Shown here piece after piece: positions 10,291 through 51,354 of a stretch of 64,000 nucleotides of DNA. The DNA is from Heteronotia binoei (Eukaryota). The notes beneath the pieces were generated by a model, which had not been told where the DNA came from, made no database searches, and was given only the letters and a program-made list of their open reading frames with translations. The stretch's first letter is position 1. Every line of letters starts with the position of its first letter. The stretch spans positions 43,710,001 to 43,774,000 of the forward strand of contig NC_083240.1 of NCBI RefSeq assembly GCF_032191835.1, written 5' to 3'. A program made the translations under genes and the position numbers.

Positions 10291-11391
10291 AGACTATTGG
10301 GCTGAAAGGTATCACTACAGGCCTCTGAGGCAGAACTCATTCGGGCCAGTCATGGCTATGACTGCCAGTTCCAGGATCTCTGGTGGCATTTCAGGAGGGC
10401 ATAGCAGTTAGGGCTTCAGAGCAGGGTCTGCCAGATCCAGGTTCTTGCTTTGGAAGCTGACTGGGTGATTTTGGACCAGTCACAAACTTCCAGCCTAACC
10501 TGCCTTATAGAGTTGTGAGAAAAGAATGATGAAAGCTGCGTTGTAAAGACTGTCCTTTGCCTATGTAGTGGCTGCAGGGAGGGGGAAGGCAATGGAAATA
10601 TGAAGTCAGAGGGGCAGATAAAGGGAAGGAGATAGGGTTGCCAACTACAGGTTCAGAAATTCCTGGAGATTTAAGGGGTGGGGCCTGGAGAAGGTGGGGT
10701 TTGAGGATGGGTGGGACCTCAGACCGGCACAATGCCATTTTCCCCTGGGGAACCACTGTTGCCAAGCTCCAGGTGATTGCTGGGATCACTCAGAATTACA
10801 ACTGCCCTCCAAATGGCAGAGATCAGCACCTCTTGAGGTGTGTGGCACTAATCCTCTGAATCCCAGCGACAGGAGGCGACGTCAGGGAAGGGCCTTGACC
10901 TCTATGCCCTGTTGGCCATCCAGAGGAATTGATTGGCCACTGGATGCAGGACTAAATGGACTATTGGTCTGATCCAGCTCTTCTTATGTTTGCTTAATTA
11001 ATTAACACAGTTCCCATGTTGGCACCCCTAACAAGATTTCTGAGTTTAGTGGCAAGTAATTGTAATACTTTTGCTCCCTAGCAACATCCTAGCAACCTCA
11101 GGAGGAGGAGCCTGTCTCAGTGAAATAATCAGCAAAATGTTTAGGTACCTGGGGAGTTAACGTTTAACCTATAATTGGGGTGATTTTATGGCAACAGTAA
11201 TATGTCATGTTGAACTTTCTTGCTCTGTAATTGCAGTATGTGTGTATGGATGTGCGTTACTGTGTGTGTGAGGAGAGGGGAGAGAGAAATTCTACCTGCA
11301 TTATCCAGCTGAGCACTACGGGGTATATGGGGATTTAGAGAACCACAATCTTAAGCCTTTTAAAATCTGATTTTTTTCATTCTGCCCAATC

Positions 11392-12357
11392 ATGATTGAA
11401 AACCCAAACTGTTCCAGTGGAATGACTGAAGTTTGGAACAGGCAGTTGGTTCTTTCTTTGGGGGTTCCTGAGCTGACCATCACCGTCGTCTCTGTGGCCT
11501 TCAACTCTGCTGTCATCGTGACCGTTGTGCTTTCTAAAGAGCTCCACAAGCCCATCTTCATTCTGTTCTGCAACTTGGCCATCTCCGATCTTCTCTCCAG
11601 CTTCTCGAACTTCTGGATCACCACCGTGTTTCTCCTCGACCCAGAAAGCACTGTCCGTGGGTGCCAAGGCCTCCTCAAGCCTTATGCCTTCTACACCATG
11701 TCAATTCTGGCCACCATCTACAATTTAGTCATCATTGGGATTGAGCGTTACTTGGCGGTGTCTGAATGCCTGAGGATGAGAAGCAGGGTCACCAGAAACC
11801 AGACCTTGGGTGTTGCCCTGGTGGCTTGGTTGCTTGCGCTCTCCTTGGGCTTCATGCCCCTGATGGGGTGGAATTGTCTAGAGAAGCCCAACGTCTCTGC
11901 TCTTTACAGCCCTCTTTGCATTGACTACTTGATCTTCATCACCATCCCCCACTGTGCAGTGGCTTTAACCTTGCCGCTCTTCACCTACATCAACATCATT
12001 GGCTTCTTGAGAAAGCATACGATGGCCATGGTGGCCCTGGGGCAAGCTCAAGCTACCTACAAGTTGGCTGAAGTCCAGGTAGCCCGGACCAGTGTGTTCA
12101 TCTGGCTCCTAGCTTTGCTCTCCTACACGCCCTTCTTTATTGGAGTTCTGTTGGACTTAGCTTATGAAGACTGCCCCGGCGATCTCTCTCAAGGGGTCTA
12201 TGTATTCCGGAACCTTACAACTATGATGATCACTATAAATTCTTTGGGGAACCCCATCATATATACTCTAAAAATGAAAAAATTGAGGCGCAGACTCAAG
12301 TTTTTGAAAAACCCCTCCACCAATCGTATCCATGTGCTGGCAGTTGGACACACATAG
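11392..12357 (+). CDS. Intronless class A GPCR, EDG (LPAR/S1PR)- or GPR3/6/12-like orphan, 321 aa
   Basis: Seven hydrophobic segments; NLAISDL (D2.50), IGIERY, W4.50 and PLMGWNC, Y5.58, SYTP (for CWxP), NSLGNPIIY, basic helix 8; N-glycosylation NCS; intact ORF; AATAAA near 12657. Confidence 0.93.
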   Translation: MIENPNCSSGMTEVWNRQLVLSLGVPELTITVVSVAFNSAVIVTVVLSKELHKPIFILFCNLAISDLLSSFSNFWITTVFLLDPESTVRGCQGLLKPYAFYTMSILATIYNLVIIGIERYLAVSECLRMRSRVTRNQTLGVALVAWLLALSLGFMPLMGWNCLEKPNVSALYSPLCIDYLIFITIPHCAVALTLPLFTYINIIGFLRKHTMAMVALGQAQATYKLAEVQVARTSVFIWLLALLSYTPFFIGVLLDLAYEDCPGDLSQGVYVFRNLTTMMITINSLGNPIIYTLKMKKLRRRLKFLKNPSTNRIHVLAVGHT

Positions 12358-13935: not shown

Positions 13936-15242
13936 AAGAGTAAGCCTGCATTAGGTTCCTTCTCAGCCTCTGGGAGCTGCAGAATATTTGTGGCTCCTGA
14001 CCTGCAATTTGGCCACCCCTGTGCTAGAGTATTGGACTAGGATCTGGGAAACGCAGGTTCAGATCCCCACTTTGCCACACCACTTTGATGGTGGACCTTG
14101 GGCCAGTTTAACCTGCTATTCTATTATAGAGTCATTCTGTGGAGTACAACGAGTAAGCTGCTTTGGCTTCATGCTGCAAAGAGAAGTGGGGTATAAATGA
14201 AGTACATGTGCTAGTGAGTCAAATCTGCTTGAGAATCCTTGACAAAGATATGCAGCAAAAACAAAACCCTCAGTAATCTTTTGGAGGTTTTTGATAAAAT
14301 GATTGATCTCGCCTCGCCTCCTCTCCCCAACGTTTGAGCTCACGGGGAGATGGGCTTGTTTACTTGGCCCTTTATTAATTTTAATTTAAATAATTTCTTC
14401 TTTCAGTATTATTAACCTTTAGCCAGGAAGGGCCCAGCTTGCCTTCCTTAATTTAATCTGCACTGCACAGGAAACGTTTCACAGTGTTTGCTGATCACTG
14501 AACGTTAGCGTTTTTATGGGTATTAATCTCGTCCTTCAGCATCAATGGCAACCTGGAGACCATCTGGAATGATTGTTTTGGCTCCTCCCTTTCAGTTCAC
14601 TTCTTTTGTTCTCTGGCTCCCCCCCCCCCCATTGACTGCTAGTTATTTTTTTCTGCATATGCCTCCTCCCCTTCGTAGTCTCGTATCTACTTATTCAGCT
14701 TCTCCATAACATTTTACTAGGTTTTGCATTTCGTTCAAAAACTTCCATGTTCAAGGGCAGTCTACCTCACTGCTGAGGAGGAAGAATTCTTCAGGGCAGG
14801 ATGCTCGGGTCATGGGATCCATGCACCTCGAGAACCTGTCCCTCATCAGGAAGGTGGCCATCATGCTGGAGGTGCCTAGGGCTTCCGGCATCCCCTGGAG
14901 CAGTGCTGCACAAAATTCTAGTGGGTACAGGCTGCAGAGTTTCTGATGCCCTGGAGGGCTCCCCCAATGCATCCCTGGCCATCCTATTTTGAGGCCACGC
15001 GTAGCTTGGGGGAGCAGGGTGCCCATCCCAGCTTGGAGGCATGCCATCTTGCTGGTAAGAGGGACAAGTACCCACTGCCCCCCCCCCACTTCACACAGTG
15101 TAAAATGAAATAAAATAAGGCACATCCATCCATGCAAAGATTTCATTCTCCTAGCCTATCTTTACCTTGGGTTATTTTTGGAAAGCTTATTCTAATCACT
15201 TCAGACATTTGTCCCAATCCCAGTCTCCAGAGGTCCCTCCCC

Positions 15243-15545
15243 TCTGTTTGGTGTAGTGGTTGCAAGTGGTGCAAGTAGTGCAAATGGTGTAGTGGTGAAG
15301 TGTGCGGACTCTTATCTGGGAGAACCAGGTTCGATTCCCCACTCCTCCACTTGCAGCCGCTGGATTGGCCTTGGGTCAGCCATAGCTCTGGCACAGCTGT
15401 CCTTGAAAGGGCAGCTTCCGGGAGAGCTCTCTCAGCCCCACCCACCTCACAGCGTGTCTGTTGTGAGGGGAGAAGATATAGGAGATTGTAAGCCACTCTG
15501 ATTCAGAGAGAAGGGCGGGGTATAAATCTGCAGTCTTCTTCTTCC
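15243..15545 (+). mobile_element. Squam3-like SINE
   Basis: Full body ending gggcggggtataaatctgcagtcttcttctt; head partly duplicated. Confidence 0.85.
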
Positions 15546-15878
15546 CCCAGTCGCTGTCACCTGCAAACTGGTCTACCATGCCTTGAATCAGCTCAGGACT
15601 CCGTGGGACACCTGACTGCTATAGGGGGGTCCAGCATCCTCCCCCATCCCGCTACGTTTTCTGCCCCCCTCCATAGCCATCGGCACATCAGAAAAAGAAA
15701 CTGGGACCTAAAATTTGCGAGCAGTTAAAAGTTACGGTAAATATGAAGGACTGCATACACAATTAGAATGGTGTCAAGCACACCTACAAAAAGGAGCAAG
15801 AAGCCCATTAACAGGGAATAGAGAATAATAAGATTCATAAAGAATTTAAATATTGTGTTCAGTCTCAGCAAGACAGGA

Positions 15879-16683
15879 TAGGGTTGCCAAGTCCAATTCA
15901 AGAAATATCTGGGGAGTTTGGGGGTGGAGCCAGGAGGCTTTGGGGGTCCAGCCAGGAGACTGTGGGGTGGAGCCAGGAGCAAGGGTGTGACAAACATAAT
16001 TGGCCTCCCAACATAATTGGGAGTTCTGGCCATCACATTTAAAGGGACCGCACACCTTTTAAATGCCTTCCTTCCATAGGAAATAATGAAGGATAGGGGC
16101 ACCTTCTTTTGGGGCATTCGATGAAATTGCTGAGCAGTCGGGTTAGAATGGATAAAAGGAGGTACTTCTTCACCCAAAGAGTGATTAACATGTGGAATTC
16201 ACTGCCACAGGAGGTGGTAGCAGCTACAAGCATAGCCAGTTTCAAGAGGGGGTTAGATAAAAATATGGAGCAGAAGTCCATCAGTGGCTATTAGCCACAG
16301 TGTGCATATATGTGTGTGTGTGTGAGTATATATATATAAATTTTGGCCACTGTGTGACACAGAGTGTTGGACTGGATGGGCCATTGGCCTGATCCAACAT
16401 GGCTTCTCTTATGTTCTTATGGACCCCTTGGTCCAATCTTTTTGAAACGTGGGGGGGGTATTTTGGAGAGAGGTTCTGGATGCTCTGTCTCAAAAAACAG
16501 CCCCCCCCAGAGCCCCACAGATCAATTCTCCATTATTTTCTATGGGAATAAGTCTCCATAGGGAATAATGGAGTGCCCAGCAGACATTTCCTTCCCCTCC
16601 CCCTGCTTTCTGATGACCCTGAAGCGGGGAGAGGGCCTCCAAACCGGGGATCCCCTGCCCCCACCTGGGGATTGGCAGCCCTA
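15879..16683 (+). mobile_element. TAGGGTTGCCA-TIR hAT (Blackjack-like) MITE containing a nested CR1 3' fragment
   Basis: TIR tagggttgcca / tggcagcccta; perfect 8-bp TSD agacagga (15871-15878, 16684-16691). Confidence 0.92.
16112..16421 (+). mobile_element. CR1 LINE 3' fragment nested in MITE
   Basis: GHSMKLLSSRVRMDKRRYFFTQRVINMWNSLP ORF2 end; tail cttctcttatgttcttatg. Confidence 0.9.
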
Positions 16684-17070
16684 AGACAGGACCGCACAGA
16701 AAACATGTGTCACCATTTGATCTTCTCGTAGAAAGCTTCCCTCTCTGCTGCTGAGGTGCAGGGCCTGGTCCCAGGGAACACGGTGCCCCAAGCAGGCCTG
16801 CTACCCACCACCCCCGAACCCTAATATTACATACTGAAATAAATTATAATTGCACCATAGCTGAAGGAAAACCCAAAACATCTCAGAAAAAAACAGCACA
16901 AGACTACAGCACCTTCTGAAAAGCTGCCTCTGACACAGCGAATTGAATTGTTCTGGGAACACTACTGGAAGAGTCACTTGTTACTTCTAATTGGGAGAAT
17001 GAAAAGTACCATCGATAACTCAATGGTTTGGGAAATTGTGGGAGTATGTAAAAAAAAGAAAAAAGAAAAA

Positions 17071-17362
17071 GGTAAAGGTAGTCTCCTGTGCAAGCACCAG
17101 TCGTTTCCGACTCTGGGGTGACGTTGCTTTCACGGCGGACTTTTTATGGGGTGGTTTGCCATTGCCTTCCCCAGTCATCTATGCTTCCCCCCGCCCCCAG
17201 CAAGCTGGGGACTCATTTCGCTGACCTCGGAAGGATGGAAGTCCTGCAAGTCAACCTGGAGCTGGCTACCTGAACCAGCTTCCGCTGGAATTGAACTCAG
17301 GTCGTGAGCAGAGAGCTTCGACTGCAGTACTGCAGCTTTACCACTCTGCGCCACGGGGCTCT
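17071..17362 (-). mobile_element. Sauria-type SINE
   Basis: ggtaaaggtagtctcctgtgcaagcaccagtcgtttccgactctgggg ... ctgcgccacggggctctt. Confidence 0.88.
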
Positions 17363-17384
17363 TCCCTGTGTATGTAGAAATGGA

Positions 17385-17640
17385 TAAACTAGCTGAAAAG
17401 ATTCAGTCATTACAAGCACACCAATTCTGTTCTAGTTTTATGACAAAATGGCCACCCTTTCTTGATTATGCTTTCGAATGAAACCTGCTGGATTTGGACA
17501 TTCCAAAAATGTATAAAAGTATTATATTATTTTAAGATTATTGCTTAATTCATCCTGAATTCACGTTTTCTTGAATTACTATTTTTTTTGGGGGGGGGGG
17601 CTGTAATGTTTCATATATATTGGATAAAAATTAAAATGAA
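17385..17640 (+). mobile_element. L1-type LINE 3' remnant
   Basis: MDKLAEKIQ..FMTKWPPFLDY stop, followed by AT-rich UTR. Confidence 0.55.
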
Positions 17641-17693
17641 GTATTTTAAAAATAGAATGAGATGAGACAACTGAAGCATTATGGGGGTGTAAA

Positions 17694-17694
17694 A

Positions 17695-17770
<76 letters not shown>
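17694..17770. repeat. (TATC)n microsatellite, ~19 units
   Basis: Pure tetranucleotide run. Confidence 0.97.
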
Positions 17771-17789
17771 ATGCCATCCAGAGAAGACC

Positions 17790-18900
17790 AGTGTGAAATT
17801 CTGGAAGCAAAAATGGAAGAGGAATTAATTACGGCCGATCAGTCCATGAAAATGCAAAAGAAAATCAATTTAAAGTACTTGCAGGACTTAAACTTATGAG
17901 AAAAAAAGAGGGGGAGAAATCTAAAGAACTTGTAAAGAACAAATGCGGATGAATTCAAGAGTTAGAAACTGAAGTACAAGATATTCAACATCAGCTTCAG
18001 GCAGCCCAGCATAATCTCTAGGAGCAAAAAGAACTAAATGAAAAACTAAGGCAAGAAAATGACGTATTGCTTCTTCAAGCACAATGACTCAGTGCATATT
18101 TACAAAAAGCAGGGGATACCTGCAAGGAACAGAAGCAAGAAATCATGATTTTGAAAAACTGAAGAGACAGTTTTTGAGGAGAGATCCGTTTTCCTTTCAA
18201 TGAGATTTGCCATCTAATACCAGGCATTCAATGTAGTAGATAGAGCAGTTAGCTTCTTAATTAGCTAACCCTGATAAAACTTGACTTCTCAGTTAAGGCT
18301 GTTCCACTAAACCCATGCCCGCCGATTGCCCAGGCTTTACGGCTATCTTTTTCGTTCATGACCTTAATTATTATTGTTTATTTTGCCCCCCTTAATGAGA
18401 AGTCGGAGCTTGATGCAGTTTGGGTGACGTTTTCTGATTACATTTTGTCGGCAATCAGGGAATTTCATATAGCACAATTTTTGATCTTAGGTGACTTTAA
18501 TGCTCGAATTGCCAATGATCCTCAGAAATGGATCTCATATTTCAGTTTTGAAGTGTCAGATTCCCTCCCATTCCAGTTGTGTTTGCCTCTTCAATCCAGT
18601 GACTCTTTAATTAATAATGCAGGTTTCAAACTAATTGAATTTTGCATAACTCATAACATCATAACACCTAATGGTCATTCTAAATTCTCAGCTGCAACTG
18701 ACTTCACCTTTTTTTCCTCGGGGCTGTACGTAGTGTGATTATTGCTTAGCCTCACCTTAGCTTATATTATCTATCGATAATTCTGTAATCGAACCATGCA
18801 CAGAAAGTGACCATCTGCCCCTCACTATACATTTAAGCATGGATCAGGCAGACACCAAGCTATCACCCTCATTCTACAATGGCCTGAGTATGTCTTGAAA
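17790..18900 (+). mobile_element. Decayed non-LTR retrotransposon 5' part: coiled-coil ORF1-like region plus apurinic endonuclease domain
   Basis: ILGDFNARI and, after a frameshift, SDHLPL motifs of APE endonucleases; upstream E/K/Q-rich frame with stops. Confidence 0.7.
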
Positions 18901-19771
18901 AAAATAAAATGGTCAGCATCTGCGACTGAGCAAGCCTTGCAAAGCAAGCTGTTATGCAGAAGGAAGCAAAAGAGAGGGAGAAGAAAGCAGATGACAGCCA
19001 GTTGCTCGGGGGCCTGATTTGGCCTCTGGGCTGCATGTTTGACACCCCTTGCCTAAACCCTGATGTTTAAGAATAGGTTCTGGGGCTGACTGTCCCCCTA
19101 AAGAAGGCCTGCTTCTGGATTATAACCAGAGTCGCTTGGAGCATTGCAGTAGAATGGGAGATCTTTACACTCTGGCATTGGGGGGCTTTGTGGCCTGTTG
19201 CTCATTGTTGGGAGTGAGTTCACCCCATTCGGTAAGGCCATGGGGAGCGCATCCAGTCACTCCAGATCTGCATGGATGTATGAGCACCTATTCAAAAGGT
19301 GCTGGTGTGCATCGCCCACATTTGGAGCTGAGTCGCCCTGTCTGTTTCTAGGATGCTTTGATCTCCCGGAGACATCAGAGAGCTGTAAGGAGAATATCCA
19401 ATGGGTCCCCTTTGCAGGATATCAGGGGAGAAACTGGGGGTGGGGCCATTGGTCAAGTTCAGCTGAGTGTGAGGATGGCTGCCAAGCAAAGGAGCCAGCT
19501 ACGGTAGCAGTAGTTCCGCCCCCCCTCCATCTGTTCTGCAGCTGCCAGTTCTCTGCAAGGGAGGGGCTCTGACTCTGTTGCAACAGTGGGAGATCTCCAG
19601 GCTCCACCTCTCACTTAATCTTTTTTGAGAAAAAAAAACTTGGCCGTGGGTTCATTATACGTAACTTTTATAACATTTTGAGATGCTGCCAAAGGCTTTT
19701 TATAAATCTACTGTTAGTACAATGGATTCCAATATCTTGTTTTTTCAAAGAGTTTTGATTAATGTTTGGAC

Positions 19772-20089
19772 CAGGAGTGAGCAAACTGTGGCTCGGGAGC
19801 TGCATGTGGCTCTTTCACACATATTGTGTGGCTCTTGAAGCCCCCTCTGCCCCATTAGCCAAATTGGAGATGGCATTTCTCTCTATAAATCAATTCTCCA
19901 AGCCAAGCCAGCTGGCAATTTGGAGAATGCATTTAAAGTTGCTTTCTTTCCACCTCTCCCTCCCTGCTCCCTCTCCTCCTCTGTTTGCTTTCTTTCCACC
20001 TTTCTTTCAATTTTTCCTTCCTTCCGGCTCCCAAACATCAGACATTTATTCTATGTGGCTCTTACATTAAGCAAGTTTGTCCACCTCTG
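19772..20089. mobile_element. hAT MITE related to 3809-4136, opposite orientation
   Basis: caggagtgagcaaactgtggctcgggagc ... cttacattaagcaagtttgtccacctctg. Confidence 0.75.
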
Positions 20090-20435
20090 CTCTAGGAATT
20101 TCAGAATATCTGTGGCAAAGCTATAGATTTTTAAAATTCATACAGTGTCAGAATAGCTTGGGGCTTCCAAGTCCCCACCCCACCAATACTCCCAAGGAGG
20201 GCCATGTTCATTCCAAATTGAACATTTTGTAAATGTACATCTTACAGTGCTTTGATAATTCTTCTGTCACTCATTACATGTTTTTAAAAACTAAATAGTT
20301 CAGCCCTGGTATGATGAGGGAGAAAGCTGGGTGGCTACTCTAATATCCCAGCCTTAATAGGTAGGCAAAATGAACACTTATTTAAACATTCTTACCCACT
20401 CCTCTGGGAATTGCACTTTAATTGTGGACATTCTT

Positions 20436-20588
20436 AATGTTTGAGGGGGCACAGTGGGAGGGCTTCTAGTGTCCTGGCCCCACTGGCGGACTTCCTGATG
20501 GCACTTGGGATTTTTTGGCCACTGTGTGACAGTGTTGGACTGGATGGGCCATTGGCCTGATCCAACATGGATTCTCTTATGTTCTTAT
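20436..20588 (+). mobile_element. CR1 LINE 3' UTR fragment
   Basis: ggcctgatccaacatggattctcttatgttctta tail. Confidence 0.8.
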
Positions 20589-21980
20589 TCTGAGCACATT
20601 CCAACATGAAGGTACCAGCTGATATTGCCAACTGCACAGTTGCAAAAGCAGCTCAAATTTTAACATAACTAATTTTAAGTTATGTATAATGTTGTTCACA
20701 CACTCATGTACATCTCTTGGATTTTTTCTTTATCGGATTAGCAGATGAATGCATGAACTACGTTGAAAAGTACAGTATTTTCAGGTAGACATATGTATCA
20801 GATTTAAAGCTCTACATCTCACCTACGAATGCACAGAACTGTCTTTATATCCAGCTAGCCCTTACACATCTGCAATGCAATGGGGCATAAGATCCAACCA
20901 CCAAAACAAGAAAACAGGGACTGTCTTCAGCAGAACTCCCTGGGGAGAAATAAAAACTAAGGCAGACTAGAACAGCTTAGTTTCCGTGGGGCCTCCAGGG
21001 ATATTACCAATTATGTGGCACACCTGCAACGATTACATGTTTATGGCCTCTTCAGAAACAGAGGTAGCTCATTTCACCATAGGGGCCACGGGATAAGAAA
21101 GGAGAGCATCTGTAGGACAGCTGGACCACAAATTGATGGGATCAGAGGCAAAGGAAGTCAGCAAGGTAATTTCCTATGCAGTGACTCCAGTTTAAGCCAG
21201 CTGAAATAATGGACTGGAAAAATTGTGCATTGGATAAATCCTAACCCAGATGTATATATTTACCAGGTAAAACTGTTCACATTAGGTGGCAATCAGGTAT
21301 ATTTTGCCCACATTTTTAACAGCAAATGCATTTTGTGATGCTTACAACAAGCTAACAGTGTAACCTGAAATATTGGGCAAGAGAATGATGTGCAACTGGC
21401 TAATATTCATCAGGTTCCTGCTAATACATCCATTTACTTTGTACTAAATATTAACCAAGAAAAGTTATTTAAGGTTAATCTTAAATCATTGTGACACATA
21501 AACATTGGGTCAAATTTTAATGTTCACTTCTGTATTTTAAGTCATTACTGGCAACACACAAATTTACAGCAGGTAAATGCTGTGCTAATCAAAAACGTGA
21601 GCAGTCCCTAAGAAACACTGTATAGAAACAGGAGTCTGAGAACAATAATGTCTAGTGGACCACTAACATTCTTTGCCAAGTGTAAAGTATAAGCATAATA
21701 TTGAGGTAATCTGGTAACCTGTTTCTATGTTATTAAAAATAGAATCTAACACTGTCATATGGAGACTTCCCCCCACATGCAAGTTCTATATATAGTTAAT
21801 GGAATAATTCCTCCACTCTGCCTTTGCTGCATTTCTGGCACAAGTTATCGGTTTAGCTACAGCTTCTTTGCAGCAGCAATATTATTTTGATTCAACTATA
21901 AATCTCACACAGTTCACAGAAGATCCTCTGTGCTTTATCAGCAAAGGACAAAAAAGTAATTAAACAAGAACTGTAAAGTA

Positions 21981-22408
21981 TTATTGTCCAGAACAGTCCG
22001 TATATGTAGTAACCATGTTTCCTCGACGCTGGGTGACAGTTCTGCAGTGCTTACTAGATCCGTGGAATTTGTTTCCTGTTCGCACTGTTTGCCTATGTGT
22101 GCTGTCAAATCCACTGAAGGAAAACATTTTTTCCATGTCTTCAAACATGTCATCAAACAGTCCACCCCCAAAGGAAAATTCTTGGAAAGAACGTCTTTGC
22201 CTGCTGTGTGCCTGCTGAGTGCTGTGAAAGTCATTCCCGAAGTGTTTCTTTGCTTGTGCATTGTGGTTTTGGCCAAAGAAATCAAAGTCTTTAAACAAGT
22301 CATCAAAATTGAAGTTAAATGGCTGCTGGAAAGTGTTTCCATTACTTCTTCCATGGCCAAACTGGTCATACTCTCTTCGTTTATTTTCATCTGACAATGT
22401 TTCATAGG
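21981..22408 (-). CDS. DNAJB9: DnaJ homolog subfamily B member 9 (ERdj4), last coding exon
   Basis: ttttacAG acceptor, phase 1; AYETLSDENKRREYDQFG, G/F-rich region, RTVTQRRGNMVTTYTDCSGQ then TAA. Confidence 0.97.
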
Positions 22409-23659
22409 CTGTAAAATAATGCAAGAAACATTTTTACGATCTTGAACAAGGGAAACTAAAAACAGTAGCAAAGCTTTGTTTGTGTGAATACCTGTACCTG
22501 TTTTTCTAAAGCTTCTCTGCTAGTAGGGCTGAAGAACTAAGTGCATTCAAGAACAATAAAGCAATTTCAGTGAAGAAACCGCTTTATGTCAATCTAGCAG
22601 AATGATATGGATGTTTTTAAAATATTGAACTATTAAAAATTATTTCCATGCCAATTTAAATCAACAGAAAAATTAATTTGGAAAAAATGGTAGTCACAAA
22701 GCAGAAAGTTCACTACTATTCCTGTCAAGTATTTACAGTTAGATACATTTAACTGGAAATGTTAAACAAAAATATTTCCTGGATGAGTCCATTTATGCTT
22801 GTAAATTTAGTTTCCTTTAAAGCAGAGCATGTTTTCAGAGTAGCACCATCTCCCTTATCCAAAACGGATCCCAAAACTGTGCAACAATGATTCATAGATT
22901 TATACACAAAAAAAAGTTACTGTGGATTGACAGACAGCACTAAGGGGCGCAATCAGGCAATGTTAGTAGCACAAGAAGAAGAAATTCCAATGAGACAAGG
23001 AGGAAATGGCTGGCCTGCCAGAATGGTATTGAGAACTCGCAAATACATAAAAGGCGGCCTCGGATTCAGTGGGAGCTCACAGGAGCACAGCTCCTGAACC
23101 TTTCTGAGAGTTCTATCTCCTTGTCCATTGAATAGTATGTGCAGCTGCATAACAATCCCTGGATGAGCTCCACCACCTATTTTTCTACAAAATGACCCCT
23201 GCATAAAGGAATTAGCTTTCACAGAGACAATGCACACCATTCAATTCCAAATGTCTAAACTCAATTTGCTTGAATGGATCAGCTCAGAACAGGAGATACT
23301 CTCAATTAACCTTTGCCCGTTAGAACTATTCATCAACAGCAAGCAGGAGAATGGATAAAATAAGCTCTAACTAAAGCTTACGTAACAGTTTGCAAGGATG
23401 ACTCAACAAATACTGTTGACAGGAGGGAAGTTAATGTTCATTCCCTAGAGGGACAAAGCTACCATCCCTTAAGACAAGGTACTAGTTCCCTTGAGGTCTG
23501 AGAACTACCAGTACATAGATACCCCAACACAAATAACTGAATGTCTTTGGCATGTTTTGAGAAGCTAAGTATTGACACAGAATAAGAACAAAAACCCTTG
23601 GAAAAGACAATGATAAAAGAGTAGCAAAATGCTACCTAATTTCATGGAATTATGCTTAC

Positions 23660-23876
23660 CTTCTGCAATTTGCCGGAACTTTGCTTCAGCTCCAGGACTC
23701 TTATTTTTGTCTGGATGATACTTCATTGCTAGTTTATGAAATGCCTTCTTAATCTGGCGATCAGATGCATTTTTGGGAACACCAAGGATGTCATAATAAT
23801 TCTCTGCAGCCAGTATTAATTCTGTTATCATTAAAATACAGAGGGCAAATATGAAGACAGATTGTGTCGTGGCCAT
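23660..23876 (-). CDS. DNAJB9: DNAJB9 first coding exon (signal peptide + J domain)
   Basis: [23 protein letters not shown] signal, [15 protein letters not shown] (HPD); acceptor at 23890, donor G|GTAAGC at 23659; joined CDS 645 nt = 214 aa. Confidence 0.97.
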
Positions 23877-24639
23877 TGTTAAACCACACCTGGGGATTAA
23901 AAAAAAAAAGTTATTTTCCTCAACCTGTATGTCACTATATTTACTTACAGCTACATAGTAGTTTTAAATAAAAGTTTAGGAAACAGTTTTACTTTTTAAG
24001 TAGCCTCAGAGTGCTGCTGCTCACAAAAGCGAGGGGCCCTACAGTTGTCTATTTCTTTGCCACAGTCAATATAACTAGATATTTTGAGAACTATTGAAGA
24101 GTACCCAGTTTTCTTCACACATTTATAGTTCTAATTTTCGAAGATATTTATATATGATCACACACCAGGCAAAGTTAGGCACTCTTGAATTCCATTAATT
24201 GTACTAGAAGTCCGTGCTTGAATATGGGACATAAAATGACTTTTGTTTGGCTGTGCCCAGGATGCTTCTGAACCTATTTTTTATAAACTCACAAAATCCA
24301 TGATGACTTTCAAGATAAACTCTCAGTTTTCTGTTCATAGAGACACATAATTCTTCACAAGGGCCAATGTAGAATTTAAGAATGAAAAGCAGCACCAAAC
24401 CAGCACATACTGAGGCTTGTCCATCTGTCCCTCGCATCAAAAGGATAACTGAAGGTTCCTATTTTGACATCTGAAAAGTTGAGTCCATTGGTTTGTAGTG
24501 TTTTACAAAAGATGAAAACTTTGTCATAAAACACTGTTCCAAAAGTCAATCTATTAAAAAACAAGGTTTCAAACCTGTACTTTTCCAGCTGCCAACATTT
24601 CTCTCATCTAAAACTGCCAAAACTTGTGTGTGGACTCAT

Positions 24640-24875
24640 CTGAGAGAAATGGGTTTGATTCCCCATTCCTGCACTTAAAGCTGCTGGAATGGCCTTGGGT
24701 TAGGCATAGCTATCACAGGAGTTGTCCTTGAAAGGGCAGCTTCTGGGAGAGCTCTCTCAGCCCCACCCACCTCACAGGGTGTCTGTTGTGGGGGGAGAAG
24801 ATATAGGAGATTGTAAGCTGTTCTGAGTCTGAGAGAAAGGCGGGGTATAAATCTGTAGTCGTCTTCTTCTTTCTC
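24640..24875 (+). mobile_element. Squam3-like SINE (5' truncated)
   Basis: Body and 3' end match other copies. Confidence 0.8.
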
Positions 24876-25206
24876 CAACCAAGGTATGATTTCAATATGT
24901 ATGCCATTATTGTTTTCCCTTAATACCCTTTGTGTATTTTTCCACATTCTTGGGAATGTGTGCTTTTTCCACATTCTTGGGAAATCTGCCTATTTCTCGC
25001 CACTGTTGATCCAAAAACAGCTTATATGATTGTTCTCCCCCCGCCCCCCCATTTTGTCCTCTCAATTACAATCCTGTGAGGTAAGTTAGGCTAAGAGTAC
25101 AACTAACTCAAAGTCACCCAGTGAACTTCCATGACAGACTGAAGATCTGGATCCAGGTCTCAAGTATGCTAGTCCAACACACTAACTACCATCCCACACT
25201 GCCTCT

Positions 25207-25410
25207 AAGGGACGGTGGCTCAGTGCATCTGCTTGGTAAGCAAGAAGGTCCCAGGTTCAATCCCCGGCATCTCCAACTAAAAAGAGTCCAGGCAAATAGG
25301 TGTGAAAAACCTCAGCTTGAGACCCTGGAGAGCCGCTGCCAGTCTGAGTAGACAATACTGACTTTGATGGACCGAGGGTCTGATTCAGTAGAAGGCAGTA
25401 GAAGGCAGGT
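25207..25410 (+). mobile_element. Squam2-like SINE
   Basis: Matches array unit; a minus copy lies at 27524-27718 in the same intron. Confidence 0.85.
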
Positions 25411-27196
25411 AGAAACTGATTAGGAATGGTAAGGAGGAAGAAAATTATACCAACTATTAAAAAAATACCATTGAACATCCTGTTGTCTATTTTCTAAAGC
25501 TAAGCTGTGGTAAGTGGAAAAGCAGAAATGGTCCAGAACAGCATGGGACAATACCAGAGACTAAATACAGATCATTCAACTAAGGATCCATGAATTCTCA
25601 GAAATGACTTTGGAACATTCTGAGAACTGGTAAGCAACATGTTTAAGAACTGGCTCAGTTGACAGGACTAGAAGAGAAAACATATTGTCTGAACATAGCC
25701 CAAGTAACAGGGCTAAAAACACATCTGATTGCAGTTCTTATTTATCATATGGCAGAGTTACACACAGCAAATATACAATATAAAACTACACTACACTTGA
25801 TCTTAGCCAAAAGTCCAAGAAGCAATACTGTTACATCTCCCTCCCTAGAAAGCACAATGCTCATATTATTCCTATGACAAATGCAAACTGTTTGGCAGGC
25901 TGCCCCACAATGGTATTGGGGTCCTGGTATTTTGCCTCATTTAAACAACAGCCCTGCACAGCTGCCAAAATCTTTGTAATCTTCTGATTGCAGGTTTAAT
26001 GTAAAGCTGAAGGCTAAGCTGAACTTTAGCTGCAGCAAGACATCACATATTCCTCATAGTAAAACTTATAATCTGAAAAATAAAAATTAGAAGCTGCCAC
26101 CATGAAATCATCGTTAAGACAATAAAAGGAAACTAAATTCTATTCTTACCTACTTGAAATAGATTCTGCACAACAAAATGTCAAAGGTTTAGCTATCAGT
26201 AGCTTTTTCAAAAAAGGCCATCACCTCCTCTAGATATCAACTCCAGAGTAAGTGGCTGAGCTATATCATCTGTGTCTATAACTGACTAGGACAAGGAACT
26301 TGATTAGATTAGTATGTGACCATTCCAGAGCGACCACTGATTGACTTTGGCTATCAATTCTGCAACAGAATCAGAGAGTGATATTAGTCACTCATTATGA
26401 TCCAATGCATACTTTGAGATGCTCATGTATAGAATATCATGGTCATTTGAGATGGATGTGCATACAATTTCATGGTCATAAGGCATCATCTATGAAAACA
26501 TGCTTTCAAGCATTTTCTGACAATGCATACTGTGAATGTGACGTCTTAAATTCACAGTATGTATGCTCAGAAAAAATATTAACTTCATCCATCTTTCTTT
26601 GGTCCCTCTGTACAGCAACAGCTGCCACAGCAGACAAAATCAACTACTGTCTAATATCATAGTTATAGTCTTACTTCCTGTTTTGCAAGCCATAGGAAAT
26701 TTAGCCTTATGACTACATTAAAACACAAAATCACAAAGAAAACCATGCAACCATAAAGTTATATCAGATACTTTTTGAAAGCATAACCTTTGATATGAAT
26801 ATATTTCCGCAGTCTTCATCAAATAGTTATTTAAAAATCTGTATGTTTCCTTAAGAGCACTTATTTTGCACACCTATCAAACTCCAAAACTATGCTTTGG
26901 ATTAGAAAATAAAAGACTGAAACCAGAAAAACTGAACTTTGTTCATTGATCTTACTGTTAATAGACAAGATCTACCAACTTAAGGGTCAACTTAAAGGGA
27001 AACCACAATTTAACAATTTTTAGCAACTGTAATAAAGCACAACTTGTTGACTTGACACAACTTGTTGACAGCTTCTCCAACCATAAGAATTCACATGTGA
27101 CAGTTGTTGCTTTGAGATGAGAGACTCTTCGCATTTTGGAGGTCAGCATGAAGGGAAAGCACAAGAGTATTCCACACCAACAGCAAACGGAGAAAC

Positions 27197-27315
27197 CAGG
27201 GCTTTTTTTTGAGCAGCAACACACGGAAACACAATTCCTGCTGGCATGGCATCAGGGGGTGTAGCCTAATATGCAAATGAATTCCTGCTGGGCTTTTTCT
27301 ACCAAAAAAGCCCTG
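27197..27315. mobile_element. Short hAT-type MITE, CAGGGCTTTTT family
   Basis: TIR cagggcttttt / aaaaagccctg; TSD ggagaaac / ggagtaac. Confidence 0.85.
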
Positions 27316-27523
27316 GGAGTAACTGATATGTCACAGTAGCTTAGAACGAAAAAAAACCCAACTTCTCTCAGAACCAATGTTAGCAGGGCAGGGTCCCAAA
27401 GAGTTCTTCAGAGAGCTAAAACTTGCTATCAGGGAAGTTATTCTACAGCAGGAAGAAATTCCACTGGATCAGCCAAATTCATCTATTACAACAAAAATTT
27501 AAGTCCTGTAGGAAAACCTCACA

Positions 27524-27718
27524 TATGAAGCTGCCTTCTACTGAATCAGACCCTGGGTCCATCAAAGTCAGTATTGTCTAGTCAGACTGGCAGCGGCTCT
27601 CCAGAGTCTCCAGCTGAGGTTTTTCACACCTACTTGCCTGGACCCTTTTTAGCTGGAGATGCTGGGGAGACTTTCTGCTTACCAAGCAGATGCTCTACCA
27701 CTGAGTCACCGTCCCTGC
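27524..27718 (-). mobile_element. Squam2-like SINE
   Basis: catatgaagctgccttctactgaatcag ... ctaccactgagtcaccgtccc. Confidence 0.85.
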
Positions 27719-28728
27719 CCTTGTTTCTGCTACACTGGGATAGAGAATGGAGAAACTGTTGAAACTCTAGGGAAAAGCAGAATATGTTGTGGTCATGATG
27801 AGCAGCAGCTGTTTATACAATAAACATTCTTCCTATCAAGGTAGTGTCTCACAGCAGAGGAAAAAGAAGAAGGACAAAACAAGCAGGAATCAAATATTGT
27901 GCTTCTTTTAGGTTTCTGCTTTATACAGTGTCAAATTTGGTTGGTCCTAATTAAAAAAAATGACACATTTCTTGCTTTTGTTTTGTTTCATTAACTTCTG
28001 GTCTGACAGACAAAGCTCATCATTTGGTCAAGTTAGCCATACAGCGTCTACACAACAGGAAACTCACTATAAACAACAGCTGAAAGACACAGACACAAGT
28101 CCACAAAGGATGCCTCAAACGGAGAAATGAAACAGAAAGCCACTTTCAAAAGGATGATGTAGGGCAAAAGGGCCAAATTCCATATCCATAACAGGCACAA
28201 CTCGCTGGACAAAAAACACACCTTCTGACACTATCTAGAGCACCATTCTCCTTTGCATTAGCTCCTTCTGCTAGAAGAATTTGTAGGAAAGCAAGTATTT
28301 AATTTAGACACTCAAAGAAACTCAGGGAAGCACCTACATACCCACCTCACACACACCATTAACTTCTCAAAACAAGTGAAGCATTTTAAAGACTGAACCC
28401 GATTTTATTTCAGCTTAAACTGTCATGGTCCCCAGCCCACAAAAATGTATTCCAATGATAAAATGGGCTCTAAACCTTGGCATAGACATACTGACTCAGA
28501 AATAAATCCTACAGATTCACAAGTGATGTTCACCAATCCTACATGATTGCACTTCTGAAGTTTTTACCATGACAACAGTAGCCAGGGAAGCTGGCGGCTG
28601 AGTGGGAATGTGAAGGCCCACTCTGAGAGAAGCTCCAACAGGCCCCCACCCTAACAGCACAACTGTCCTCTCTTCTGTCAGACTAAGTGGTGGGTCAGCC
28701 ACACTAATCGTGTGAGCGCGCCAATCGC

Positions 28729-29234
28729 TTCGGTTGCCAAGTCCGATTCAAGAAATATCTGGGGACTTTAAGGGTGGAGCCAGGAGACACTGGGGGTCCA
28801 GCCAGGAGCAAGGCTGTGACAAGCATAACTGAACGCCAAAGGGAGTTCTGGCCATCACATTTAAAAGGACCGCACACCTTTTCAATGCCTTCCCTCCATT
28901 GGAAGTAATGAAGGATAGGGGCACCTTCTTTGGGGGCTCATAGAATTGGACCCCCTGGTGCAATCTTTTTGAAACTCGGGGAGTATTTGGGGGAGAGGCA
29001 ACGGATGCTATGTTGCAAATTTGGTGCCTCTACCTAAAAAAAAACAGCCCCCGCAGAGCCCCAGATACCGGCGGATGAATTCTCCATTATTTCCTAGGGG
29101 AACAAGTCTCCATAGAGAATAACAGAGTTCCCAGCAGCCATTTCCCTCCCCCCACTTTCTGATGACTCTGAGGCGGGGGAGGGGGCCTCCAACCCGGGGT
29201 ATCTCCTGCCCCCACCTGGGGATTGGCAACCTTA
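28729..29234 (+). mobile_element. TAGGGTTGCCA-TIR hAT MITE, ~75 bp from the DNAJB9 exon 1 donor
   Basis: Colinear with 49609-50091 copy; TIRs degenerate, no clean TSD. Confidence 0.85.
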
Positions 29235-29306
29235 CTTGTACTCCCCAGGAAAGCTCCCATTTTAATCGCTCCCCTCCCGGTCTCCCATGACACCCTCCGG
29301 CCTCAC

Positions 29307-29335
29307 CTGGCGCCCGCTCGCCGGTCCTCCTCTCC
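29307..29335 (-). other. DNAJB9: Probable short non-coding exon 1 of DNAJB9
   Basis: Donor CAG|GTGAGG at 29306; TATATAA on minus strand ~25-30 nt upstream; TSS position inferred. Confidence 0.65.
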
Positions 29336-29718
29336 GTCGCTTTCCTCGCAGCTCCGGCTTATATAACCATCCCCTCAGAGGCGCGGCGCGCGGAAGCGGG
29401 GCGACTCTACTACACGAAGCGCTCTCCGATTGGCCGCCCGACGTCACGGAGCGCTCTCCGATTGGCCGCCCGGCGTCACGCGACGCGGCCGCTTGGGCGC
29501 GCGTGGACTGCTGTTGTTGCCCCGCGAGTCGCTCCAGCGGTTGAGTGACAGCCGTCGGATCGCGACGGCCCCTTCCTTCCGGCGAGGGGGAGGAAGAGAG
29601 GGCGGGACGACGGCGCGTTCCCGGAAGCGGAAGTCCTGCGGTTGTCCTGCCTGAGGACGACAAGGGGGCGGAGTTACCGCTGAGGGACCATCTGGGCGGC
29701 CGCTGAAGGAGCCCGGGG
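29336..29718. promoter_or_regulatory. Bidirectional CpG-island promoter DNAJB9 / THAP5
   Basis: TATA (minus), duplicated CCAAT + TGACG module 29418-29480, GC boxes, tandem ETS-type ccggaagcggaagt near 29620. Confidence 0.85.
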
Positions 29719-29801
29719 ATGCCGCGGTACTGTGCGGCCACCTGCTGCAGGAACCGCGCGGGGCAGAGCGCCCGAGACCAGCGCAAGCTCAGCTTCTACC
29801 C
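29719..29801 (+). CDS. THAP5: THAP domain-containing protein 5, exon 1
   Basis: MPRYCAATCCRNRAGQSARDQRKLSFY(P); donor CC|GTGAGT, phase 2. Confidence 0.95.
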
Positions 29802-29957
29802 GTGAGTGCGGCAGGGAAGGGAAGGGAAGGGACTGCGGGTTCACCAGCCAGGGGGCTCCATGCCACCCCCTTGCACCTTTGCTCGGGAGGAAGCCCGCCT
29901 GCTTTCAGTGGGGATGGCTTGCAAAGGAGAAGACGGTGATATTGGGTTTATATCCCG

Positions 29958-31410
29958 CGCCGTGGCGCAGAGTGTGAAAGCTGCAGTGCTAAACTCTGCT
30001 CGCGACCTGAGTTCGATCCCCGGCGGAAGCTGGGTTTTCAGGTAGCCGGATCGAGGTTGACTCCGCCTTCCCTCCTTCCGAGGTCGGTAAAATGAGTACC
30101 CAGCTGTGGGGGGGAAGGGTAGATGACTGGGGAAGGCAATGGCAAACCACCCCGTAAAAAAGTCTGCCGTGAAAGCAACGTCACCCCAGAGTTGGAAACG
30201 ACTGGTGCTTGCAGTCGTTTACCTTTTAAATGTTTTATTAATAAGAGCCCCATGGTGCAGAGTCTTAAAGCTACAGTATTGCAGTCTGAGCTCTCTGCTC
30301 ACGACCTGAGTTCGATCCCCGGCGGAAGCTGGGTTTTCAGGTAGCCGGATCGAGGTTGACTCCTCCTTCCCTCCTTCCGAGGTCGGTAAAATGAGTACCC
30401 AGCTTGCTGGGGGGAAAGTGTAGATGACTGGGGAAGGCAATGGCTAACCATCCCGTAAAAAAGTCTGCCGTGAAAGCAACGTCACCCCAGAGTCGGAAAC
30501 GACTGGTGCTTGCACAGGGGACTACTTTTACCTTTTAAATGTTTTATTAATAAGAGCCCTGTGGCGCAGAGTGGTAAAGCTGCAGTATTGCAGTCTGAGC
30601 TCTCTGCTCACGACCTGAGTTCGATCCCCGGCAGAAGCTGGGTTTTCAGGTAGCCGGCTCGAGGTTGACTTCACCTTCCATCCTTCCGAGGTGGGTCAAA
30701 TGAATCCCCAGCTTGCTGGTGGGAAAGTGTAATGACCGTGGAAGTTCGGTCCGCGGCAGAAGTTGGGTTTTCAGGTAGCCGGCTCGAGGTTGACTCAGCC
30801 TTCCATCCTTCCAAGGTTGGTAAAATGAGTCCCCAGCTTGCTGGGGGGAAAGTGTAGATGACTGGGGAAGGCAATTGCAAAGCACCCCGTAAAAAGTCTG
30901 CTGTGAAAACATCGTGAAAGCAACATCACCCCAGAGTCGGAAATGACTGGTGCTTGCACAGGGGACCTTTCCTTTCCTTTGTCTTTTAGTACAGCATGCT
31001 TAAATTAGGGTTGCGAGGGCCTCCTGGCCAATGGTGAAGTGGGGTGGGTAGGGTTGCTAGATCCAGGTTGGGAAACTCCTGGATGCTGCGCTAAGTAGCA
31101 TGGTGTACTAAGAGCAAGCCCTGTGGCGCAGAGTGTTAAAGCTGCAGGACTGCAGTCCTAAGCTCTGCTCACAACCTGAGTTTGATCCCCAGTGGAAGCT
31201 GGGTTTTCAAGTAGCCAGCTTGAGGTTGACTCAGCCTTCCATCCTTCCAAGGTCGGTAAAATGAGTCCCCAGCTTGCTAGGGGGAAAGTGTAGATGAGCA
31301 GGGAAGGCAAAGGCAAACCACCCCGTAAAAAAGTCTGCCGTGAAAACATTGTGAAAGCAACATCACCCCAGAGTCAGAAACTACTGATGCTTGCACAGGG
31401 GACCTTTCCT
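29958..31410 (+). repeat. Tandem cluster of ~5 Sauria-type SINEs in THAP5 intron 1
   Basis: Units near 29958, 30243, 30553, 30740 (partial), 31116; spacer ttttaaatgttttattaataagagccc repeated between units 1-2 and 2-3. Confidence 0.9.
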
Positions 31411-31677
31411 TTGCTATACTCTGAATCTCAGGCTGCGATCACACACACTAAATCAGTGGTCCCCAACCTTTTTGGCACCAGGGACAAAGTCAGTTTTTCC
31501 ATGGACTGGGGTGGTGGTGAAGGTGGTGATGGTTTCAGGATGATACAACTGTGCTCTTTATTTTGGTGTGGTGGTTAAGTGAACTGACTCTTATCTGGGA
31601 AAACTGATAAGATTCCCCACTCCTCCACTTGCAGCTGCTGGAATGGCCTTGGGTCAGCCATAGCTCTCATAGGAGTT

Positions 31678-31880
31678 GAACAAAGCCGGAGTCAAGCTGC
31701 ACTTTTTAAGACGAACCAAGTTTTATTCAGACAATACCTGATCCCCTCGTCTGATGAAATGTGCTTAGAGAGCACACGAAAGCTTACGTTCTGAATAAAA
31801 TTTGGTTGGTCTTAAAGGTGCAACTTGACTCCTGCTTTGTTCAACTGCTTCAGACCAACACGGCTGCCCACTTGGATCTA
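31678..31880 (+). mobile_element. Penelope-like element terminus with short inverted 5' arm, inserted in a Squam3-like SINE
   Basis: 13-bp duplication tctcataggagtt (31665-31677, 31881-31893); 31678-31733 is inverse of the 3' part; same sequence as 7126-7275. Confidence 0.8.
31748..31788 (+). ncRNA. Minimal type I hammerhead ribozyme motif
   Basis: cgt-CTGATGA-A-(a)tgtgct tagag agcaca(c)-GAAA-GC-TT-acg: stem I CGU/ACG, 6-bp stem II, palindromic AGCU in place of stem III; one A.C mismatch at base of stem II. Confidence 0.6.
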
Positions 31881-32654
31881 TCTCATAGGAGTTGTCCTTG
31901 AAAGGGCAGCTTCTGGGAGCGCTCTCTCAGCCCCAACTACTTCACAGGGTGTCTGTTGTGGGGGAAGAAGATAAAGGAGATTGTGAGCTGCTCTGAGATT
32001 TAAACTGGAGGGCAGGATATAAATCCAATGTCATTGTCTTATTATTATTACTACTTTGTAATATATAATGAAATAATTCTACAACTCACAGCCCAGTTGC
32101 TAACAGGCCACGGAACAGTAGTGGGGGACCCCTGCACTAAATAATGCACTTTCCAACTGGATCTTGCCAGTTCACACAGTAAAATCCTACTGAAAAGTGC
32201 ACTGAAAGTGGATTGAAAGTGCATTATTTAGTATGTGTGATGGCAGCCTCAGAGCGTCTCACAATTGCTTTTATCTTCCCCCACAACAGGCACCCTGTGA
32301 GGTGGGTGGGGCTGAGAGAGCTCTCCCAGAAACTGCCCTTTAAGGACAGCTCTGCAAGAGCTATGGCTGACCCAATCTGCCCTTGTGGCCTTAACAGGAT
32401 TGATGCTTCCTTTCATGCTCGGCTATAATGCAGATTAAAAAAGAAAGATTATAAAGGATTATTCAACCAACTGTCCCCCCTACTCTGAAACCCTGGCTCT
32501 TCTGTTCAGTGATAAGGATCCTAAGATCACTCTAGCAATTGCCAAATTTGTCCTGGTCCTTTATCTTTTGCATTAAAAAAAAAGTGTCTTCTGTCACTCA
32601 AGATTTGTGAATCAATGAGCTTCTAAGGGTACGAAAGGAAAGGCTGCAGAAGAA

Positions 32655-32900
32655 GATATTGGATTTATATCCCGCAGTGTACTCTGAATCTGAGTCTCAG
32701 AGCGATCACAATCTCCTTTACTTCCCCCCCCTCCACATACACACAACAGACACCCTGTGAGGTGGATGAGGCTGAGAGGGCTCTTGCAGCAGCTGCCCTT
32801 TCAAGGACAACTCCTGCCATTCCAGCAGCTGCAAGTGGAGGAGGCGGAAATCAAACCCAGTTCTGCCAGATAAGAGTCTGCGCACTTAACCACCACACCA
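32655..32900 (-). mobile_element. Squam3-like SINE
   Basis: agaagaagatattggatttatatcccg tail to cttaaccaccacaccaaac head. Confidence 0.85.
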
Positions 32901-34082: not shown

Positions 34083-34087
34083 ATTAA

Positions 34088-51353: not shown

Positions 51354-51354
51354 T

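Follow-up and report, generated by a model that had tools for sequence, protein, structure and literature searches.

The locus considered here raises the question of which receptor is encoded by one open reading frame (ORF) of the gecko Heteronotia binoei and whether that receptor still works. The window, that is, the whole stretch of 64,000 nucleotides that was analysed (NCBI RefSeq assembly GCF_032191835.1, contig NC_083240.1, positions 43,710,001 to 43,774,000 of the forward strand), contains a gene that a preliminary description considered to encode an intact orphan G protein-coupled receptor (GPCR) of the EDG group, deprived of the residues that hold the lysophospholipid headgroup and possessing either a different ligand or constitutive activity. 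The analysis carried out has revealed that this ORF is probably a functional copy of an ancient, gnathostome-wide family of orphan class A GPCRs in the MECA cluster (melanocortin/EDG/cannabinoid/adenosine), with LPAR1 as its nearest characterised relative.

An intact gene under purifying selection

The reading frame is open along its 321 codons, as first described, and the motifs named at that time were all found in the product (IGIERY at residues 115-120, PLMGWNC at 156-162, SYTP at 244-247 and NSLGNPIIY at 283-291). The protein, which is identical (100% match) to protein P0001, was recognised by the Pfam 7tm_1 model with an E value of 2.9e-29 and 102.8 bits against a cutoff of 30.5. The first methionine is considered the start of the receptor because an in-frame stop lies 8 codons upstream, and the N-terminal pattern M..NC...W lines up with that of the orthologues in the alignment. 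The class A microswitches N38 (N1.50), D66 (D2.50), E118-R119-Y120, W146 (W4.50), Y199 (Y5.58) and N287-P288-x-x-Y291 are present and, together with the 7tm_1 match, identify the product as a class A (rhodopsin-like) GPCR. From the CWxP toggle only P6.50 is retained in the receptor family, a loss that is not disqualifying for class A, yet unusual within the MECA cluster. The AlphaFold2 model, obtained with a 123-sequence alignment as input, showed seven transmembrane (TM) helices and helix 8, with a mean predicted local distance difference test score (pLDDT) of 83.6 and a predicted template modelling score (pTM) of 0.83. The N-terminus has only 16 residues and is coil in this model, without the cap helix that is seen in lipid MECA receptors.

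The gecko gene is intact and under purifying selection. Pairwise ratios of nonsynonymous to synonymous substitution rates (dN/dS, Nei-Gojobori method) were 0.25 for the window against both Gekko japonicus and Eublepharis, 0.18 for Gekko japonicus against Eublepharis, and 0.12-0.18 for the pairs that involve turtle, bird or gar; the whole range is thus far from the value of 1. In a 25-species alignment, 57 of the 57 family-invariant residues are conserved in the window receptor, and Q27E is its single departure from the columns conserved in at least 90%.

Range, phylogeny and names of the receptor family

A word-based protein search gave Gekko japonicus as the best named match to the window receptor (89% identity). 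Full-length orthologues were found in other geckos (80-89% identity to the window protein), other squamates (62-72%), turtle and alligator (61-65%), birds (53-62%, with one bird cluster comprising 192 members), amphibians (51-55%), coelacanth (52%) and sawshark (52%). The family ranges over shark, coelacanth, gar, sturgeon, one teleost, amphibians, turtles, crocodilians, birds and squamates; teleost members are rare, represented by one gymnotiform sequence at 35% identity. An exhaustive search of 1.84 billion cluster representatives revealed only five family clusters (a tetrapod/coelacanth/shark cluster plus gar, sturgeon, junco and gymnotiform teleost), the weakest with an E value of 2.6e-37, and the first match outside the family followed after a clear gap, with an E value of 3.9e-20 and 28% identity. 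Public gene models of the family are sometimes wrong: in the sturgeon model (P0124) the N-terminal half of the receptor is fused to ZNHIT3, after which it is named, and the junco model (P0122) carries an N-terminal extension of about 50 residues.

Phylogenetic analysis was carried out with a quick tree of 146 rows and a careful tree of 72 rows, the latter under LG+C20+F+G4 with posterior mean site frequencies (PMSF). The receptor family formed one clade, with 100% support in the Shimodaira-Hasegawa-like approximate likelihood ratio test (SH-aLRT) of the quick tree and 100/100 in the careful tree; its stem measures about 1.4 substitutions per site. LPAR (100/100), GPR3/6/12 and CNR were each recovered as a 100%-supported clade of their own that does not contain the family, which lies also outside the S1PR clade. 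Orthology to LPAR1-3, to S1PRs or to GPR3/6/12 has been ruled out by these trees, and no clear characterised orthologue emerged, in agreement with the non-mammalian lineage of the MECA/EDG group that had been proposed. In the best trees the family stands outside the block of LPAR, S1PR, GPR3/6/12 and CNR, next to a bowfin singleton (P0125) and to amphioxus MECA-like receptors on long branches. Approximately unbiased (AU) tests (LG+F+G4, 45 rows) rejected at the 5% level only the topology in which the family was constrained with GPR3/6/12, and this marginally (p = 0.042); the constraint joining it to LPAR, S1PR and GPR3/6/12 together was not rejected (p = 0.137).

A profile made from 25 orthologues matched LPAR1 (1.4e-34), S1PR1 (5e-25) and CB1 (1e-23) in the PDB, and Foldseek placed LPA1, CB1/2, S1PR1, A2A and GPR3/6 in the top ranks for the gecko model, so that the top sequence, profile and fold matches are all MECA receptors. 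No GPR119 chain was found among the 60 best PDB sequence or profile matches, nor among the 50 Foldseek matches listed, and the ESM Atlas returned generic class A clusters only. The gecko receptor has neither the disulfide between C3.25 and extracellular loop 2 (ECL2) nor P5.50, with L94 at 3.25 and A191 at 5.50 (the latter assigned because Y199 is Y5.58), as in LPAR, S1PR, GPR3 and CNR representatives. The lack of C3.25 had been correctly noted, but it is not a distinguishing feature, since the LPAR, S1PR, GPR3/6/12 and CNR representatives also lack that cysteine. Considering these results, we read the gecko receptor as a member of a distinct MECA/EDG-like family without a characterised orthologue, whose nearest relative among the characterised receptors would be LPAR1.

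The bowfin singleton (P0125, L010:10001-10933) shows 28% identity to the window protein in phmmer, and a word search of 5.8 billion proteins retrieved only P0125 itself. It shares with the family Y6.48, K7.35, N7.36, E6.30 and the TM5 insertion with its proline, and is for this reason considered a very divergent relative rather than a member of another known family; the ECL2 cysteine in its ancestral place is retained. The bowfin receptor may have arisen as a duplicate that evolved fast, or represent a sister lineage that survives as a relic. Within 10 kb on either side of it no gene was called, and its flanks have no recognisable genes in common with the gar locus.

The names assigned automatically to family members are in conflict (LPAR1-like, LPAR1-A-like, LPAR1-B-like, LPAR2-like, LPAR3-like, S1PR2-like and MC5R-like). 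Such names, present in hundreds of non-mammalian genomes, imply a known ligand, although the evidence indicates that the receptor is none of those named, and would mislead the inference of lysophospholipid signalling in birds, reptiles and frogs. A 2006 survey of chicken GPCRs described the EDG receptors as one-to-one with the human ones and does not mention the gene studied here. A 2019 Ensembl census of rhodopsin-like GPCRs includes dozens of vertebrate clades without human orthologues, with MECA clades such as 'GPR119B' and 'GPR187A/B' (GPR188 in its main text) (PMC6504862). The receptor family is probably listed in that census, possibly as 'GPR119B' and less likely as 'GPR187B', an assignment made by taxon pattern: 'GPR119B' shows gar 1, reptiles 2 and birds 3, the only non-mammalian pattern with both gar and birds (PMC6504862). 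If the name 'GPR119B' applies it is misleading, because GPR119 is not among the best PDB and Foldseek matches listed. The existence of the family is therefore not very surprising as a category, clades of this kind having been counted already, and their motifs, synteny, selection and function are not treated in the census (PMC6504862). Apart from the census, no functional or descriptive study of the family was found in the literature.

Signature residues and a possible mode of action

Signature residues were counted in an alignment with named clades (A2), which contains 55 family members, 9 LPAR and 6 S1PR representatives. Positions 3.28/3.29, which are R/Q in 9/9 LPAR and R/E in 6/6 S1PR representatives, are P97/Y98 in the gecko receptor when counted back from R119 (3.50), and P97-Y98 stands opposite the LPAR1 R-Q pair in the HMMER alignment. 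Both the gecko residues and the LPAR and S1PR pairs had been given correctly in the preliminary description; the alignment extends the loss of the headgroup pair from the gecko to the whole family, with alanine (26) or proline (25) at 3.28 and tyrosine at 3.29 in 55/55. Y3.29, S6.47, Y6.48 and C176 are invariant in 55/55 family members, and are thus neither due to chance nor specific to the gecko. The family has also tyrosine at 3.32 (Y101) and threonine at 3.33, where LPAR has D3.33. In TM6, A6.44, S6.47 and Y6.48 replace the F, C and W of the other groups, and D6.58 (D255) is conserved; W6.48 and F6.44 are core microswitch residues, with a central place in present models of how class A receptors are activated. 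Position 6.30, glutamate throughout the family, is M, P, S, T or D in other MECA groups, with T or S in the GPR3/6/12 representatives.

At the top of TM7, N274 pairs in the HMMER alignment with an LPAR1 lysine located one position after E, reportedly K7.36 in the LPAR1 structure paper. N274 begins a sequon, N274-L-T (12211-12219, 7.36-7.38), and N-x-S/T is retained in 25/25 aligned orthologues. Glycosylation of N274 seems unlikely because the sequon lies 7 residues inside the modelled helix, and the Asn and Thr side chains may instead have been conserved for a function in the pocket.

The most conserved segment is ECL2, where 10 of 21 columns do not vary between shark and bird; no invariant column was found in the intracellular loops. 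The canonical second ECL2 cysteine, retained in LPAR, S1PR, GPR3/6/12, CNR and the bowfin receptor, is V168 in the gecko, and C176 is specific to the family. The spacing between C162 and C176 is 13 residues in the gecko (C-x13-C, correcting the C-x12-C first given) and reaches 16 in other species. Four extracellular cysteines are conserved in the family (C7, C162, C176 and C261). The TM5 insertion with P186, together with P195, is found in no relative except the bowfin receptor, which has P186. The lower pocket is predicted to be hydrophobic and aromatic (I2.60, F2.64, I3.36, F182, I183, F6.51, F6.52, V6.55, A7.39 and I7.42).

In helix 8, an end cysteine that is a likely palmitoylation site is present in 16/25 orthologues and is N307 in the window (codon 12310-12312, 'LKFLKN'). 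This position is Asn in the window gecko, Gekko japonicus and Paroedura, and Ser, Leu, His or Gln in several other squamates.

As to the mode of action, gating by a ligand that is amphipathic and lipid-like, and that is held in a manner unlike lysophosphatidic acid (LPA) or sphingosine-1-phosphate (S1P), is a possible but doubtful proposal. An amphipathic ligand is suggested by the kinship with lipid receptors and by the hydrophobic, aromatic lower pocket. With the clamp of R3.28 and Q/E3.29 replaced by A/P and tyrosine, phosphate binding of the LPA or S1P type is disfavoured; an anionic headgroup could still be bound, since the basic R273 (R7.35, 54/55) would lie at the pocket mouth. The polar entrance of the pocket would be formed by Y3.29 (Y98), Y3.32 (Y101), D/N178, D6.58 (D255) and R7.35-N7.36 (R273-N274), and a C162-C176 disulfide probably closes ECL2, which may cover the pocket as a lid or contribute to the binding site. 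Signalling would proceed through the standard ERY and NPxxY motifs and a remodelled transmission switch (A6.44, S6.47, Y6.48 and the TM5 insertion with its proline); with W6.48 and F6.44 both replaced, the usual toggle and the PIF-type relay would have to work differently. E6.30 would be available to lock R3.50, so that the receptor may rest in an off state and not be strongly constitutive.

A constitutive orphan like GPR3/6/12, signalling with no ligand supplied, or with a membrane lipid bound permanently, and held active by Y6.48/A6.44, is an unlikely alternative. The family-wide replacement of both core microswitches, W6.48 and F6.44, would fit it, and so would the presence of GPR3, GPR6 and GPR12 among the structural and sequence neighbours; that the best Foldseek matches are active-state complexes is a weak point in its favour, given the state bias of AlphaFold. 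Against it, grouping with GPR3/6/12 was the only constrained topology rejected, and E6.30, absent from the GPR3/6/12 representatives, is retained together with ERY, a combination that is the classic inactive-state lock and speaks, though only indirectly, against high ligand-independent Gs signalling. The strong conservation of the extracellular face, and of ECL2 above all, fits the recognition of an outside ligand. A ligand-gated receptor would be favoured over a constitutive one by the constrained ECL2, the intact ERY and NPxxY and the available E6.30, and the constitutive activity suggested at first finds no support here.

Still less likely is a genuine lysophospholipid receptor of the LPA or S1P type, in which the phosphate would be bound through R7.35 and tyrosines instead of R3.28. 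No other profile match comes near that of LPAR1, WNC in ECL2 is common to both, as are the contexts of ERY and NPIIY, the Arg at 7.35 adjoins the position of the LPAR1 Lys, and a sister position to LPAR was not rejected in the AU test (p = 0.11). These likenesses have to be set against the 3.28/3.29 pair, which is invariant in 15/15 LPAR and S1PR representatives and replaced in 55/55 family members, and against the threonine that takes the place of LPAR D3.33. The modelled coil N-terminus of 16 residues, without a helical cap, also argues against such a receptor; in the LPAR1 and S1PR1 structure papers the N-terminal cap reportedly supplies further phosphate contacts.

A bolder combined reading, namely a MECA branch older than the gnathostomes, and not a diverged LPAR, that would respond to a messenger distinct from LPA and S1P, with ECL2 as a lid and Tyr, Asp and Arg at the entrance, and would be switched by Tyr6.48/Ala6.44, is held tentatively, at somewhat below an even chance. 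Several points weigh against the main reading of the gene as a functional member of an ancient orphan family with the mode of action proposed above. The position beside the long amphioxus branches may be due to long-branch attraction, topologies joining the family to LPAR (p = 0.112) or to LPAR plus S1PR (p = 0.169) were not rejected, and MCR, vertebrate ADORA and GPR119 sequences were absent from the trees. No mammalian member appeared among the 120 best matches, a search of annotated proteins only in which mammalian genomes were not included. The literature searched contains no ligand, coupling or basal-activity data for the family, and the search for sequencing runs listed no RNA run as evidence of expression. 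The Logan contigs that carry the gecko and bird orthologues (L007-L009) are colinear with the genomic loci and are thus uninformative on splicing or expression. The idea of a lipid ligand comes only from the kinship with lipid receptors and from pocket residues read in alignments, and the C162-C176 pairing and the side-chain orientation in the pocket are assumed. Finally, three-taxon arithmetic on the pairwise distances gave a dN/dS of about 0.4 for the window branch and about 0.12 for the Gekko japonicus branch, a possible sign of relaxation or change in the window lineage.

It is very improbable that the gene is drifting to loss in the gecko lineage, with its frame open by chance and its regulation disturbed by a 37.5-kb insertion carrying DNAJB9 and THAP5: the raised window-branch ratio, the start of this large insertion 2.4 kb downstream of the stop codon, the absence of a listed RNA run and the Asn in place of the helix 8 cysteine would fit such a process, but the full-length frame, the 57/57 family-invariant residues with one departure from the columns conserved in at least 90%, the pairwise dN/dS of 0.25, well below 1, and the lack of the same cysteine in other squamates with intact genes all stand against it.

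If the combined reading is true, a receptor-ligand axis still used by sharks, amphibians, reptiles and birds has been discarded by mammals. The family is of at least jawed-vertebrate age, constrained and syntenically stable, and the change of W6.48 and F6.44 constitutes a natural experiment on rebuilding the toggle switch. The receptor is also a target for deorphanisation, with Y98, R273, Y245 and C162/C176 as the positions of note.

Genomic neighbourhood and comparison with known receptors

The ancestral home of the family is the neighbourhood of ZNHIT3 and MYO19, and the association of the receptor gene with a carbonic anhydrase gene, ZNHIT3 and MYO19 predates the split between gar and tetrapods. 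In gar and bustard the order is carbonic anhydrase (-), GPCR (+), ZNHIT3 (+) and MYO19 (-), and ZNHIT3 follows the receptor gene at about 1.7-2.4 kb in gar and a bird. The teleost copy adjoins a carbonic anhydrase gene, ZNHIT3 lies 5.5 kb downstream in the leopard gecko and adjoins the receptor gene on the opposite side in the softshell turtle, and in the sturgeon both are fused in one gene model. In the window, ZNHIT3 and MYO19 were found after a block with DNAJB9 and THAP5 (Table 1) that starts 2.4 kb downstream of the GPCR stop codon. In blastn, colinearity of the Eublepharis sequence with the window ends at 14736 and is recovered at 52276, with 37.5 kb here and about 4.8 kb there; for this reason the adjacency of DNAJB9 looks like a lineage-specific insertion or translocation of a two-gene block. 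DNAJB9, which the preliminary description had used as a landmark, has been ruled out by synteny as a meaningful neighbour of the receptor gene, its position being derived in the gecko lineage. The raised dN/dS described above falls on the lineage that carries this insertion.

Two short interspersed repeat families (about 230-280 bp and about 165-200 bp) are present in the window in many copies and both orientations. Both were found also in the Gekko japonicus locus, with 75-87% identity, and look like short interspersed nuclear elements (SINEs).

Table 1. Location of the receptor gene, its signature codons and other features in the window
Feature	Position	Strand	Basis
Nearest in-frame stop 5' of the ATG, 8 codons upstream	11368..11370	+	sequence
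Orphan MECA/EDG-like class A GPCR, complete single-exon coding sequence, 321 aa plus stop	11392..12357	+	uninterrupted ORF
P97-Y98 codons (3.28/3.29), where LPAR has R-Q and S1PR has R-E	11680..11685	+	alignment
E118-R119-Y120 (E/DRY motif)	11743..11751	+	alignment
ECL2, C162 to C176 (C-x13-C)	11875..11919	+	alignment
I185-P186, one-residue TM5 insertion, then invariant proline	11944..11949	+	not in LPAR, S1PR, GPR3/6/12, CNR
E227 (6.30), potential ionic-lock partner of R3.50	12070..12072	+	E in 55/55
S244-Y245-T246-P247, TM6 SYxP for CWxP (W6.48 to Y)	12121..12132	+	S, Y and P each 55/55
R273-N274 (7.35/7.36), basic/polar pair at the top of TM7	12208..12213	+	R 54, K 1; N 55/55
N287-P288-I-I-Y291 (NPxxY)	12250..12264	+	alignment
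AATAAA, candidate polyadenylation signal, 300 nt past the GPCR stop codon	12657..12662	+	inferred from sequence
Block of about 37.5 kb with DNAJB9 (-) and THAP5 (+), between GPCR and ZNHIT3	14737..52275	.	blastn colinearity
DNAJB9 exons	21981-22424, 23565-23876	-	Pfam DnaJ domain
THAP5	36.8-40.9 kb	+	Pfam THAP domain
ZNHIT3-MYO19 context segment, conserved neighbours of the receptor family	57403..63960	.	tblastn and gene calls
Last ZNHIT3 exon	~57.40-57.60 kb	+	tblastn of gar and bird flanks against the window
MYO19 exons	58.74-63.96 kb	-	tblastn of gar and bird flanks against the window
Repeat family of ~230-280 bp, examples	601-888, 15285-15548, 24626-24876, 35140-35400, 39200-39435, 50728-51005, 54400-54661	both orientations	
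Repeat family of ~165-200 bp, examples	9787-9981, 20430-20588, 37302-37470, 55233-55448	both orientations	

Among the known receptors, GPR3, GPR6 and GPR12 (and GPR185/GPR12L and GPR186) are similar to the family as orphan MECA receptors without the R3.28 clamp, some of them with non-mammalian extra members. They differ in retaining C6.47-W6.48 and F6.44 and in lacking E6.30, with an identity of about 22-27%. S1PR1-5, the second-best group by sequence and profile, have the MECA architecture and D6.58 in common with the family; the S1PR residues R3.28/E3.29, N2.60 and W6.48 are contrasted by the loss of the pair, I2.60 and Y6.48. The closest likeness is that of LPAR1 (EDG2) and LPAR1-3, which provide the best sequence, profile and structural match and a sister position that the AU test does not reject, and which share with the family the lack of C3.25 and of P5.50, the WNC of ECL2, ERY/ERH, NPIIY, a single coding exon and a similar size. 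Nevertheless, the identity to LPAR1 is only about 25-27% and the family lies outside the LPAR clade. LPAR receptors have R3.28/Q3.29 and D3.33, CWxP, F6.44 and an ECL2 of the C-x6-C type, whereas the family has A/P and Y, T3.33, SYxP, A6.44 and C-x13-16-C, and, unlike LPAR, an extra TM5 residue plus P186, a short N-terminus without cap helix, and E6.30.

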